Positions 57,077 through 60,600 are shown, counted from the whole stretch's first letter. The stretch: 63,941 bases of DNA, filler included, from Hyphochytrium catenoides (GCA_900088475.1; 8 parts of 8 records of this genome joined end to end with filler, not necessarily neighbours in it), one strand, 5' to 3'. The notes: generated by a model from the sequence alone, not told the origin. Numbers and translations: made by a program.

Positions 57077-57121
57077 CACCATAACAAAGAAGAGCTTCCA
57101 ACCAACACTGCCATCTCATCA

Positions 57122-58040
57122 CCAGCTACAGCCCAGATGCGGTACAGTGGTACAGCGTAGGAGGCCAGGCTACATCATGTACGTTGCTGCCTGTAGAAGG
57201 CGTTTCGGGATGTCAACAAAGCCCAACAACAAACTCCAGGAACAAAGCCCAACAACAAAAGCCCAACAACAAAGCCTAACAACAAAGCCCAACAACAAAG
57301 CCCAACAACAAAGCCCAACAACAAAGCCCAACAACAAAGCCCAACAACAAAGCCCAACAACAAATCGTCTAAAATCGACGTAGTTCTACGTTGCTGCCTT
57401 TGGGGAAAAGGGATCTAAAATAGGAAAATAGGCTTCCGCTAGGCAACCCAGGGAGAGAGTGTACGGCTAGCTACAGTGGTACAGTCAGATGCGGTACAGC
57501 ATAGGCGGGCAGGCTACATCATGTACGTATACAGTATACAGCCAGCTACAGCCAGATGCTACAGTGGTTCAGCGTAGGACGCCAGGCTACATCATGTACG
57601 TTGCTGCCTGTAGAAGGCGTTTCGNNNNNNNNNNNNNNNNNNNNNNNNNNNNNNNNNNNNNNNNNNNNNNNNNNNNNNNNNNNNNNNNNNNNNNNNNNNN
57701 NNNNNNNNNNNNGCCCAACAACAAAGCCCAACAACAAACCGCCTAAAATCGACGTAGTTCTACGTTGCTGCCTTCGGGGAAAAGGGATCTAAAATAGGAA
57801 AATAGGCTTCCGCTAGGCAACCCAGAGAGAGAGTGTACGGCTAGCTACAGTGGTACAGTCAATTGCGGTACAGCATAAGCGGGCAGACTACATCATGTAC
57901 GGGGCTGCCAGCGATGGAAGGGTTGTAAGACAGGCTTCCGGTAGCCAACCCACCGAAAAAGAGAGAGACTGTGTGTACAACTAACTACCTACAAATGCAA
58001 GAAGCAGACAGCTAGCGACGCCCAGATGCGGTTACGCCAG
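57122..58040. repeat. Higher-order tandem repeat (units of ~420 bp) containing a 13-mer array
   Basis: Units at 57122-57541 and 57542-~57901, then a degenerate partial unit. Each full unit has CTACATCATGTACG subunits and a (GCCCAACAACAAA)n array (~11 copies at 57221-57364). Confidence 0.9.
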
Positions 58041-58752
58041 AGCCATCCAATCAGCCTTTAGAATCCCTAGTCGCTGCGTCGCTGCGGCATCTCACGGCTC
58101 AGAGGCTCCGCGACACTGAGATGAGAGTAAGATAGCGAATTGTCGTCATTCTTCAGGCCCTGAAAGCCTTCTCGAGCACTATTTGAGGCTGCGCCAAACT
58201 GCTTGTGCCAGGCACCAAGCTCACCTTCAGCGCTCGGCATTTCCGAAGGTCTGCGAGGTACTTGCGAGAGAGTATTGAAAATATAGTCAAAGGAAGCAGC
58301 ATATTGTGTGGAGGAAGGGGATGGTAAGGGAAGGAAACGCGAGGCAAGGAGGGGAGGGTTAGGGATATGGAATGAGGGAGGCCACCATCTTGCCAATTGA
58401 GAGGAAGAAGCTGTGCTATCAAAATATCTTTGAATTGTCATGGAGCTAACCCTTGCTATTCTCCAATAGCCTGAACATCTGCCGTTTGAAGATACAGTGA
58501 ACCTTGGTCGTCTACTTGGTCCTCCGGGACCCTAAGTGTTGCCCACTCTTAAGCTGCTCTTGGTGGCTGGCCTGATAAAGTGTGCAAGAGCGCCATCAAA
58601 AAACCTCGCCGGAAGCGCCTGGCACCAGCAATATACACCCTCAGTAGCAAAATAGACATGATGGCGGTATTTTCATCTGTCTTAATGCCATGCGTACAAG
58701 CTCTGTCATAAGAGTAGCTCATCGGTAACTAAATCACTGGTTTGCCTTGAAA

Positions 58753-60081
58753 TTATTCAGAATTGAAGTAGGCGGCAAAGAAGTTAAGGAGGATGAAAGT
58801 CACCCACTCCCTAAGGGAGTTTCTGCCACTACGATCATCTAGCGTAAATCTTATCGATGCCCTATTCTTCTGACAGAGCTTGTACGCGTTAAGACAAAGA
58901 TAGATACCGCAGTCATGTATGTTTTGCTGCTGAGGGCAGCGCATTCTTGTAGGCTTGTCACTGTGTTCTCTAAGTCCCCTGACGTTGGCAATGAATGATC
59001 GCCAGCAAGTATCTCGTCCAGAGCCAACTTCTTTGTTGGCGCTGTCAAGCAGGTAAGCGCGTCCTTCGTTGATGTAAAAAAGAATAAAGTGCCTCTGCTC
59101 TGCGTCAGCTTCAAACTCATTCTCAGTGGCTACTAGGATGACTGGGACGAAGATCCTCTCTGAGTCATTATACTGGAACTCCGGAAGTTGATCAGATGAA
59201 TGAACCCTATAGAAGAGCACGTCGGGATAGTACTCGGCCAGCATGACCATCCACGCGTTGATCACCTCACCGTCTATATTCTGTCCAGCGTTATACACTT
59301 GCCTAAGATCCTCACAATGAAGTACAACGTCAGAGCCGAAATGCGAAGGCAGTAGTTTCTCCCTGCCACCAACTGTTGTCTGCCAGTCCACACCCAGAAT
59401 ACCTTCCACCGCGGCTCTCTGAGAATCTGACAGGCGACGTGACTCCTTCTCTGCTAGTGAAAAGAGCCCTAGAATGCTGCCAATGGAAATAGAACTTGCC
59501 AAGCTTGGTGTCTCAGGAGGGCGTTGTACAGGAGCTTGCGCAGGGGGCTGCTGTGACTTCTCTGGGGGCTGCTGTGCCTGCTCTACCGGTTCACTCGGGC
59601 TTGAATCTGCTTGTTGCCTTAATCGTTGACCTGCAGGTCGGTCCGATCCCCTGTGCGTCTGCTCCATCTCAGCTACCGGTATAGGAGTATTTCGGTGACG
59701 GTGACAAACCCTAGACTTCCCTCTATGAGGTGTTTCGCACCCTGGTATTACACATAGTCCTGGCGCATATCCAGGATCGTTACACGCGGTAGCGTGCCTC
59801 GCACACTTGGATATATTCGATCTTCGCAAGCGATTGCAGCCTTGTACGTCACAAAAGAGCTGTATCCTACAAGCGCCATCCGTATTCATAAGCGCTTTGC
59901 TGTGCTCTCCACACCGACGGGTCTGCTTTGCTATCTGTCGTTTCTCACAACCCTCTATCTCACAGATTTTTCGTTTTCGTTTCATCAGTTGAGTTTCTAA
60001 TGGCAGTAAGTGGTTTGGGCATTGATCATGCTCCCCACTGCGCCGATGAGGGCAGCAACGGACTAGGCACGTCCCAGGCAT
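58753..60081 (-). CDS. Intronless protein with four C-x4-C-x10/11-C-x2-H fingers and a C-terminal Ulp1/C48 cysteine protease domain
   Basis: Fingers CLVRCC..CPNH, CEIEGC..CGEH, CDVQGC..CARH and CVIPGC..CHRH. Protease motifs IDGEVINAW, QRHFIL (His), LLDS (Asp) and PQQQNIHDCGIY (Gln, Cys). Confidence 0.85.
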   Translation of the reverse strand: MPGTCLVRCCPHRRSGEHDQCPNHLLPLETQLMKRKRKICEIEGCEKRQIAKQTRRCGEHSKALMNTDGACRIQLFCDVQGCNRLRRSNISKCARHATACNDPGYAPGLCVIPGCETPHRGKSRVCHRHRNTPIPVAEMEQTHRGSDRPAGQRLRQQADSSPSEPVEQAQQPPEKSQQPPAQAPVQRPPETPSLASSISIGSILGLFSLAEKESRRLSDSQRAAVEGILGVDWQTTVGGREKLLPSHFGSDVVLHCEDLRQVYNAGQNIDGEVINAWMVMLAEYYPDVLFYRVHSSDQLPEFQYNDSERIFVPVILVATENEFEADAEQRHFILFYINEGRAYLLDSANKEVGSGRDTCWRSFIANVRGLREHSDKPTRMRCPQQQNIHDCGIYLCLNAYKLCQKNRASIRFTLDDRSGRNSLREWVTFILLNFFAAYFNSE

Positions 60082-60470
60082 TGGCTATTTGACTGAGTGT
60101 TGGTGGCTTTGCGATGGTGGTGGAAAAAGATGTTGTGTGAGAAACCTGGAGAACAGTCTGCGACTTGGAGTCATCCCCGAGCGGAATTACCCAAGAAAAA
60201 AGCCCAAACAAAGTGTACATAGAGCTATAAAGGGCGAAGAGCTAACTCCCATGGAATTTATTTCTAGGGTAGAGTTGCGAATCTGGACTTTAGAAATATT
60301 ATCTATGGAGTTGTCGGAGCACCAGGCCTCCCAAAAATGACCGGGTAGGCTGTACATTCTTTTGAAGTTTTCTGAGAAGTTTTCGAATCCGAAACTCCAT
60401 AGTTAATATTCTTAAGAGGCCCGGTTTCGCAACGTTTTCCTAAAGTGAAAATAGTCTTCACCCTTATTAA

Positions 60471-60600
60471 GGTTGTAATAAGACAGGCTTCCGCTCTGCA
60501 ACGCCTCGAAAGGTGTACAGCTAGCTACAAACCGATGCCGGTACAGTATAGTGGAGGAAGGCAGGTGTACATCATGTACGTTGCTGCCCCGCGGTAGAAG
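60471..60600. repeat. Copy of the 57-58 kb repeat family, same orientation
   Basis: GGTTGTAATAAGACAGGCTTCCGCT..GTGTACAGCTAGCTACA..TACATCATGTACGTTGCTGCC..GTAGAAG matches subunits at 57122-57960. Confidence 0.85.

Follow-up and report, generated by a model that had tools for sequence, protein, structure and literature searches.

Does the intronless gene that lies between repeats at positions 57077 to 60600 of our window belong to the genome in its own right, or is it part of a selfish element or of an amplified repeat unit? The window is a stretch of 63,941 nt of Hyphochytrium catenoides DNA (GCA_900088475.1), filler included, in which eight parts that are not necessarily neighbours are joined end to end; all positions are counted from its first letter. 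The initial annotation of this 3.5-kb piece had proposed an undescribed selfish cassette or a macrosatellite, with a gene coding for zinc fingers and a Ulp1 protease at its center. We consider it reasonably likely that the locus instead represents a lineage-restricted gene for a probably DNA-tethered, Ulp1-like isopeptidase in a satellite-rich region. An intact intronless gene of eukaryotic type occupies an island of ~2.4 kb within a satellite-type repeat. Its product would carry three to four small Cys3-His zinc-binding modules at the N-terminus, beside a basic cluster resembling a nuclear localisation signal (NLS), and a disordered S/P/Q-rich linker would join these fingers to a C-terminal, very divergent member of MEROPS C48, a clan CE cysteine isopeptidase with a His-Asp-Cys triad and an oxyanion-hole Gln. 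The fingers would anchor the enzyme on nucleic acid, probably DNA, and the protease would there strip neighbouring bound proteins of a ubiquitin-like modifier, most likely SUMO.

The gene and the parts of its product are laid out as follows:

58753..60081, minus strand: single-exon ORF of 442 aa, stop codon included (ORF list; end-to-end alignment with the relatives P0001, P0004 and P0002)
59695..60069, minus strand: four C-x4-C-x10/11-C-x2-H modules (motif scan)
59392..59694, minus strand: S/P/Q-rich low-complexity linker, residues 130 to ~230 (composition; AlphaFold pLDDT 23-29)
58756..59391, minus strand: putative divergent C48 (Ulp1/SENP-like) catalytic domain, residues ~231-442 (family profile against the PDB)

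The 442-aa frame runs from ATG to stop with no internal stop codon, in agreement with the intact intronless ORF of the initial annotation, and since the gene is a single exon no spliced model is needed. By our own arithmetic, a random frame would stay open over this length with a chance of (61/64)^442, about 6e-10. The protein reads zinc-finger array, S/P/Q-rich linker and Ulp1-like protease in this order, and its alignment with P0001, P0004 and P0002 includes the C-terminal residues R424, W426 and L431. The linker contains an in-frame tandem duplication of 21 nt (59543-59584, two copies, 90%). None of the six other ORFs of the 3.5-kb piece matched Pfam at E up to 0.1, consistent with the earlier remark that no transposase is in view. 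An Rfam scan of the piece returned a single sub-threshold match to a miRNA family (E 0.63) and a tRNA scan returned none, so that the flanking repeat shows no recognisable derivation from tRNA or other RNA. A source in bacteria or phages was considered for this DNA and rejected in view of its satellites and microsatellite, of the low-complexity linker, and of the lack of prokaryotic and phage relatives. Nothing in it points to human DNA either.

Only three relatives were recovered when 1.84 billion representative proteins were searched exhaustively. Two of them have the same fingers-plus-protease design, and the third combines the same fingers with an HNH endonuclease. P0001/P0004 (E 2.3e-23) and P0002 (E 1.5e-10) each carry fingers and protease in a single called protein, and this shared architecture points to selection on the fusion. 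Overall identity to the relatives is 29-30%. The third relative, P0003, has an HNH endonuclease at its C-terminus, and its match to phrog_1271 (3e-8) spans both the fingers and the HNH domain. Canonical Ulp1/SENP proteins were not reached by the exhaustive search at E up to 0.001.

The assignment of the C-terminal half to the C48 family comes from the profile of the whole family rather than from curated models. The four predicted catalytic residues are encoded as follows:

59089-59091, minus strand: codon of His331
59044-59046, minus strand: codon of Asp346
58927-58929, minus strand: codon of Gln385
58909-58911, minus strand: codon of Cys391

The Pfam C48 model (PF02902) has a gathering cut-off of 20.7 bits. 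The whole protein remained below it, with 17.2 bits over 30 residues around the Cys, as did its C-terminal half (18.5 bits), P0001 (19.5) and P0004 (19.4), and P0002 gave no C48 match at E up to 1. By contrast, a family profile of four members (the window protein and its three relatives), run against the PDB, matched Ulp1 best (1EUV; E 1e-6, and 6.6e-7 in a second run) over Ulp1 residues 20-216 of 221, followed by SENP1, SENP2, SENP5, SENP8 and Ulp2. The match to SENP2 covers the full domain (E 3e-5), and all 14 of the 14 best PDB matches are clan CE proteases of Ulp/SENP type.

The likeness to Ulp1/SENP (MEROPS C48, PF02902; 1EUV, 1TGZ, 2IYC) thus includes alignment of the profile over the whole domain, and it extends to the order and spacing of the His, Asp, Gln and Cys residues. 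His331, Asp346 (His+15), Gln385 (Cys-6) and Cys391 align with the Ulp1 catalytic motifs SHW, VDS and QQPNGYDCG, and the Q-x5-C box Q-Q-x-N-x-x-D-C-G is common to both. Within the family H331, Q385, N387, D390, C391 and G392 are invariant, whereas the Asp346 site is occupied by Asn in the relatives. These alignments demonstrate homology to C48, with its catalytic residues aligned, and agree with the initial description of a zinc-finger array joined to a C48-type protease whose catalytic set is apparently complete, the former recovered by motif scan and the latter by profile against the PDB. Unlike in Ulp1/SENP, the finger array here takes the place of the usual N-terminus, and the catalytic His is followed by Phe (Tyr in P0002) instead of the Trp of the SHW motif. 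In Ulp1/SENP structures, this Trp and the Trp of the RRW motif clamp the Gly-Gly tail of SUMO. The RRW Trp aligns with Asn in our protein and with Trp in P0002, in an alignment that is uncertain at such divergence. Since both clamp positions differ (Phe, Asn), specificity for SUMO is uncertain, and SUMO is best regarded as the presumed substrate.

The initial annotation had suggested profile and structure searches for both domains. These were successful for the protease through the match of its family profile to Ulp1 (E 1e-6), while the fingers have no curated match, and AlphaFold on the four-sequence alignment reached a pLDDT of only 37.4 for the whole protein and 38.5 for the domain, too low for a fold search.

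The N-terminal modules are the following:

60010-60069, minus strand: finger module 1, residues 5-24
59902-59964, minus strand: finger module 2, residues 40-60
59794-59853, minus strand: finger module 3, residues 77-96
59695-59754, minus strand: finger module 4, residues 110-129

Modules 2-4 match the family consensus C-x-[VI]-x-G-C...C-x2-H. Module 1, which reads C-L-V-R-C-C, is less canonical and may not be translated because it lies upstream of Met33, the start point of the relatives. A basic KRKRK cluster at residues 34-38, found by composition and motif scan, looks like a nuclear localisation signal. By motif scan, the same finger motif occurs two to three times in P0001, P0004 and P0002, and six times in P0003. 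The sole significant relative of the finger region is in fact the finger array of this HNH endonuclease, whose residues 7-104 align with residues 33-131 of our protein (E 3e-10) through the repeated C-x-[VI]-x-G-C-x10-C-x2-H motif. P0003-type proteins (phrog_1271; Cys-rich/HNH proteins, Bacillus phage 0305phi8-36) differ by carrying a nuclease as effector rather than a protease, and the window protein misses the PHROG models. By analogy, finger arrays in an HNH endonuclease setting are DNA-binding modules. The window protein is best described as a candidate zinc- and DNA-binding protein with a predicted nuclear location.

A kinship of the fingers with EsV-1-7/WRKY19-like repeats of stramenopiles and giant viruses, proposed earlier, did not hold against curated models. 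The N-terminal 144 aa gave no EsV-1-7 or WRKY19-like Pfam match at E up to 10, the only matches being CxC6 (E 0.025, below cut-off) and CEMIP_X, and the fingers of the relatives gave only weak matches to zf-C3Hc3H and CxC6. The two groups have in common the tandem modules and the ligand order C-x4-C...C-x2-H, but ten or eleven residues separate the second and third Cys here, whereas this spacing is x16 in EsV-1-7. In Ectocarpus, a transposase has acquired an EsV-1-7 domain (PMC12477816).

The window protein is absent from a collection of 15 billion proteins, and word-index homology searches added nothing new, whether run with the full protein, with the family profile or with the finger region. 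No relatives were found in IMG/VR with the single protein, the family profile or P0003, in JGI metagenomes with the family profile, or in prokaryote genomes with either P0003 or the family profile, and neither the window protein nor P0002 has a match in PHROGs. The gene belongs to a tiny, patchily distributed orphan family that had not been annotated before. Large DNA viruses commonly encode clan CE proteases and Cys-rich repeat proteins, and an orphan gene devoid of introns might have been brought by a large DNA virus or virus-like element of which the locus would be an integrated remnant. The viral context of EsV-1-7 (PMC7457493, PMC12477816) would fit such an origin. We nonetheless judge it highly improbable, as IMG/VR and PHROGs are empty for this protein, the piece contains no other viral gene, and the fingers miss the EsV-1-7 model.

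What surrounds the gene is a repeat family with the following parts:

57077..58045, plus strand: left satellite block, with ~120-bp subunits of two subtypes, a 13-mer microsatellite and an assembly gap
57077-57207, 57415-57535, 57536-57624, 57789-57909 and 57917-58045, plus strand: left subunits of ~120 bp
57214-57364, and 57713-57738 after the gap: 13-mer microsatellite of the left block
57625-57712: assembly gap of 88 N inside the 13-mer microsatellite of the left block
60470..60600, plus strand: right-hand copy of the ~120-bp subunits, oriented as on the left and truncated at the contig end

The left block is a higher-order repeat with a period of ~374-417 bp (189 nt at 96% with a spacing of 374, and 65 nt at 97% with a spacing of 417). 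Its subunits carry an invariant 13-bp near-palindrome, and the invariant core TACATCATGTACG of the repeat occurs five times against zero expected, on either side of the gene. The 21-nt repeat core has no exact match in metagenome or viral contigs. On the left of the gap, 57560-57624 matches 57143-57207 at 97%, and on its right 57713-57901 matches 57339-57527 at 96%; both sides are thus collinear with the unit before, and the gap stands in place of a 13-mer array that measures 131 nt in unit 1. ORFs that span the gap are artefacts. An effect of the gap on the frame of the gene was also ruled out, since it falls in the microsatellite and over 1 kb separates it from the ORF.

Subunit mapping agrees with the initial description of the same repeat family on both sides of the gene, in direct orientation throughout. 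Both ends of the piece lie inside the repeat, which probably causes the assembly break at both ends. Such an arrangement could also result from a macrosatellite in which a unit of ~3.4 kb, made of satellite block and gene, is repeated head to tail and was collapsed by the assembler. Recent copies of such a unit should overlap almost perfectly at the ends, but the best match between the two ends is 80% over 70 nt (57124-57191 against 60523-60588). Moreover, the right-end copy is 77-81% identical to the left copies, against 94-97% among the left copies themselves, which disfavours a recently amplified repeat-plus-gene unit and leaves the macrosatellite improbable.

Could the gene then be the cargo of a mobile element, acting as a sequence-specific anti-silencing factor whose fingers would read the repeats of the element, for example the 13-bp near-palindrome, while the protease would de-SUMOylate the silencing machinery? 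Ulp1 domains are recurrent in transposons, including Ginger1 and Mutator-like elements (PMC2836005) and KIU in VANDAL (PMC13317346). The targets of the VANC proteins are tandem repeats in the non-coding parts of their own element (PMC5735166), and the presence of the invariant repeat core on both sides of the gene would parallel this situation, as would an intronless gene with extremely rare and patchy relatives and an adjoining pseudo-fragment. Against this stands the absence from the 3.5 kb of any transposase, integrase, helicase ORF or viral gene, as well as of terminal inverted repeats or target-site duplications bounding the gene, the only inverted repeats being local ones at its 3' end and upstream. 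Furthermore, the flanking copies are direct, and left and right differ as described; no second full copy is known, and the viral, metagenome and prokaryote genome collections hold no relatives. With ends that are only ~80% alike, neither the selfish cassette nor the macrosatellite of the initial annotation could be demonstrated in this piece, and we regard carriage by a mobile element as rather unlikely. We infer that the flanking repeats are plain satellite and not the termini of an element.

Two inverted repeats lie close to the gene:

58638..58728, plus strand: decayed inverted copy of the catalytic-Cys segment at 58851-58936 (blastn, tblastn, RNA fold)
60274..60433, no strand assigned: inverted repeat with ~45-nt arms at 81%, 190-350 bp upstream of the start codon (DNA fold z = -4.6)

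The decayed copy matches the ORF at 79% over 92 nt by blastn (E 3e-11) and residues 383-411 by tblastn (E 2.5e-4), and contains a stop codon and a Gly in place of the Cys. A tblastn search of the piece for further gene fragments brought out only this segment (58639-58725). This pseudo-copy shows that local rearrangement has taken place. The copy pairs with its partner arm in a long imperfect hairpin that spans the 3' end of the gene (RNA fold z = -9.6) and would arise in any read-through transcript. Hairpin, nearby decayed fragment and location in satellite DNA might all be expected if the gene were itself a relic without function, be it a copy that died recently or a frame preserved by chance in heterochromatin. 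That the 442 codons are open and all catalytic residues and finger ligands intact, conserved at 29-30% identity, next to a fragment that does display decay (stop codon, loss of the Cys), makes such a relic very improbable.

Against our preferred reading, the lack of introns, the extreme rarity of relatives, the adjoining pseudo-fragment and the repeats on both sides would be no less expected of a gene of mobile or viral origin.

The combination of a C48 protease with a DNA-targeting part has precedents. XopD, a type III effector of Xanthomonas, is a C48 deSUMOylase that a DNA-binding module tethers to chromatin and whose targets there are transcription factors (PMC8415633). The present protein is alike in joining a DNA-binding domain, here predicted, to a C48 protease, but the DNA-binding domains are unrelated, with zinc fingers here, and EAR motifs and a secretion signal are both missing from what is a eukaryotic-looking gene; no sequence relationship is seen beyond clan CE. 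In Arabidopsis VANDAL transposons, VANC proteins, some with an Ulp1 domain (KIU), bind their own non-coding tandem motifs and lift silencing (PMC5735166, PMC13317346). KIU/VANDAL and Ginger1, in which Ulp1 is C-terminal on the transposase, share with our protein an Ulp1 domain and a nucleic-acid-targeting part (again predicted here), and KIU/VANDAL also tandem-type repeats, which here lie on both sides of the gene. Unlike these elements, our locus has neither a transposase nor an integrase domain nor terminal inverted repeats in 3.5 kb.

By analogy with these systems, the protein might serve a selfish element or satellite as a sequence-directed deSUMOylase. The fingers would read the 13-bp near-palindrome, the protease would free silencing factors or heterochromatin of SUMO, and the gene, or a larger element that carries it, would thereby stay expressed. 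Such anti-silencing is known in kind from VANC/KIU, and here it is suggested by architecture and position; we think it doubtful at best.

While C48 proteases with DNA-targeting parts were known from XopD and from plant and animal transposons, the present family may represent a separate solution, previously unannotated. It combines a compact Cys3-His array, for which the DNA-targeting part of an HNH endonuclease is the one clear relative, with a protease too divergent for curated models. If the protein is a lineage-specific nuclear SUMO protease only, its value would be modest, consisting of a wider sequence range for C48 and a new finger module. If the fingers read the neighbouring satellite, the locus would offer a simple system for the locus-specific removal of SUMO from chromatin, and would also show how selfish or heterochromatic genes stay active. 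Were a sequence-directed deSUMOylase true, it would represent an independent, non-plant case of VANC/KIU-type anti-silencing, built on a finger module common to homing-type HNH endonucleases.

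The 442-aa product of the minus-strand ORF listed below, hereafter the window protein, joins an array of zinc fingers through a linker to a C-terminal protease-like domain, and is most simply read as a putative nuclear, nucleic-acid-tethered Ulp1-like isopeptidase. The analysis covered 57077-60600, a piece with no hint of human DNA; as the gene has a single exon, a spliced model was unnecessary. The gene lies in the following setting.

Features of the piece 57077-60600
57077-58045: left higher-order repeat block, comprising two subtypes of a ~120-bp subunit, a 13-mer microsatellite and a linker
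57214-57364 (11.5 copies) and 57713-57738: 13-mer microsatellite, unit CAACAAAGCCCAA, part of each higher-order unit
57625-57712: assembly gap (N run) inside the left repeat block
58638-58728 (just past the stop) and 58851-58936 (coding, catalytic-Cys region): arms of inverted repeat I1, 79% identity
58753..60081, minus strand: window protein ORF, ATG to stop, 442 aa, single exon
60274-60433: inverted repeat I2, arms of ~45 nt at 81%, 190-350 bp upstream of the start codon, DNA fold z = -4.6
60470-60600: right repeat subunit, in the same orientation as the left subunits and 77-81% identical to them, truncated by the contig end

Taken alone, the window protein matches the Pfam model of C48, the class of Ulp1/SENP-type SUMO proteases, only around the Cys (17.2 bits, cut-off 20.7), and Ulp1 in the PDB with an E-value of 0.0094. 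A family profile, built from the window protein and the database relatives P0001, P0004 and P0002, recovered Ulp1 (1EUV) at 1e-6 over residues 20-216 of 221 and SENP2 across the full domain; the next hits were SENP1, Ulp2, SENP5, SENP8 and bacterial Ulp-like deubiquitinases. When this profile is aligned to 1EUV, His331 (R-H-F) falls on S-H-W, Asp346 (L-L-D-S) on V-D-S, and Q385...C391 (Q-Q-Q-N-I-H-D-C-G) on Q-Q-P-N-G-Y-D-C-G, and the initial annotation was therefore correct in describing an apparently complete His/Asp/Gln/Cys set. Across the family, the catalytic His, Gln, Asn387, Asp390, Cys and Gly392 do not vary; the Asp346 column holds Asn in P0001, P0004 and P0002, as against Asp in the window protein. 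Judged by these alignments, the C-terminal domain truly belongs with the relatives of C48, although at the extreme of their range. Ulp1 carries a Trp after the catalytic His, whereas this family has Phe or Tyr there; the Trp of the Ulp1 RRW stretch is matched by Asn in the window protein, and P0002 alone has kept a Trp in this stretch. In Ulp1, these two Trp residues clamp the Gly-Gly tail of SUMO, so SUMO is only one candidate for the ubiquitin-like protein cut here. Substrate or activity may vary among the window protein, P0001, P0004 and P0002. AlphaFold models of the window protein and of the protease domain have pLDDT values of 37.4 and 38.5, respectively, too low for the models to be of use.

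The GC content of the ORF (50%) equals that of the piece. Three database proteins align with the window protein from the second finger through the last residues, so neither end of the ORF is missing. In the relatives the protein starts close to the position of Met33, thus translation may start at Met1 or Met33, and the less canonical finger 1 (residues 5-24; residues 1-33 correspond to 59983-60081) may belong to a 5' leader and not to the protein. The S/P/Q-rich linker, which evolves by slippage, carries an in-frame 21-nt tandem duplication (59543-59584, 2 copies, 90%). The proposed molecular function is the same under all readings except that of a dead ORF, which we regard as very improbable.

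A motif scan identified four finger modules (residues 5-24, 40-60, 77-96 and 110-129) with the spacing C-x4-C-x10/11-C-x2-H, the family consensus being C-x-[VI]-x-G-C-x9-12-C-x2-H, and a KRKRK cluster at residues 34-38 that looks like a nuclear localisation signal. Pfam gave no significant match to the N-terminal 144 aa (CxC6, E 0.025, below cut-off), and the proposed link to EsV-1-7 or WRKY19-like Cys/His repeats did not hold up, neither model matching the fingers in Pfam. An exhaustive HMMER scan of 1.84 billion proteins (E up to 0.001) returned three relatives: P0001 (323 aa; P0004 is its cluster mate) and P0002 (482 aa), both from assemblies of public sequencing runs, and P0003. The window protein itself is absent from the 15-billion-protein collection. 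P0001/P0004 and P0002 share its fingers-linker-protease design, and the long linker of P0002 has only weak coiled-coil-type matches in Pfam.

P0003 (365 aa, from an NCBI record) is the sole significant relative of the finger array (E 3e-10 against the 1.84 billion proteins), and carries six finger modules followed by an HNH endonuclease domain. Its Pfam matches are weak for HNH (E 0.0076) and below cut-off for the fingers (zf-C3Hc3H, E 0.0067), and phrog_1271 'HNH endonuclease' covers both fingers and nuclease (E 3e-8). The finger module thus appears to be common to nuclease and protease partners, and its use with a DNA-cutting domain is the best available argument, by analogy, that it would bind DNA. 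Cys-rich/HNH genes of Bacillus phage 0305phi8-36 show a weak tblastn match to the finger part of P0003. All further searches for relatives, which covered a word index, prokaryote genomes, IMG/VR and JGI metagenomes, were blank. A viral remnant is a highly unlikely origin for the gene.

As first described, direct-orientation repeats lie on both sides of the gene, ~700 bp downstream and ~390 bp upstream of it. The left block has a period of 374-417 bp with copies 94-97% alike, and its last subunit (57917-58045) is degenerate. The best-conserved part of the flanking subunits is TACATCATGTACG, an exact 13-bp near-palindrome present five times (57171, 57515, 57588, 57889, 60568) against 0 expected, which looks like a candidate protein-binding box. 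The flanking repeat has no match in Rfam or among tRNAs. Directly left of the gap, 57560-57624 is 97% identical to 57143-57207 (direct-repeat family D4), and directly right of it, 57713-57901 is 96% identical to 57339-57527 (family D3); in a complete unit, 131 nt of 13-mer microsatellite lie between these blocks. The gap flanks are therefore collinear with the preceding unit, and the gap stands in for a second 13-mer array. Frames drawn across this N run are artefacts, and an effect of the gap on the ORF was rejected, the two being >1 kb apart.

The I1 arm past the stop is a decayed inverted copy of the coding arm, with a stop codon and Gly replacing Cys, and is the sole trace of any copying of the gene. 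A read-through transcript over both arms is predicted to form a ~90-bp hairpin (fold z = -9.6), which might give rise to small RNAs directed against the gene. I2 may be an element of the promoter, or else a small foldback that inserted there.

The selfish cassette proposed at the outset, with the protein as element cargo or anti-silencing factor, draws on circumstantial evidence: the gene lacks introns, its family is an orphan one, repeats flank it on either side, and a pseudo-fragment lies nearby. The evidence against comes from a view limited to 3.5 kb, which holds neither a transposase (as already noted; six other ORFs were scanned and all lack a Pfam match) nor terminal inverted repeats, and in which the left and right repeats have diverged. 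This reading is unlikely, and a macrosatellite, the amplified unit suggested initially, is distinctly improbable. We lean towards a gene confined to its lineage and located where satellite DNA is abundant.

Three precedents bear on the isopeptidase reading. In XopD, a C48 SUMO protease is fused to a DNA-binding domain (PMC8415633). Transposases of the Ginger1 and Mutator types have Ulp1 domains attached to them (PMC2836005). The VANC/KIU proteins encoded by VANDAL elements bind motifs that recur in tandem within the non-coding DNA of the element itself, and they lift silencing (PMC5735166, PMC13317346). The mechanism suggested initially is therefore of a known kind and not a new category. What is new here is the way the domains are combined and a branch of C48 that has diverged very far, and their importance would rise sharply if it were true that the fingers read the flanking satellite.
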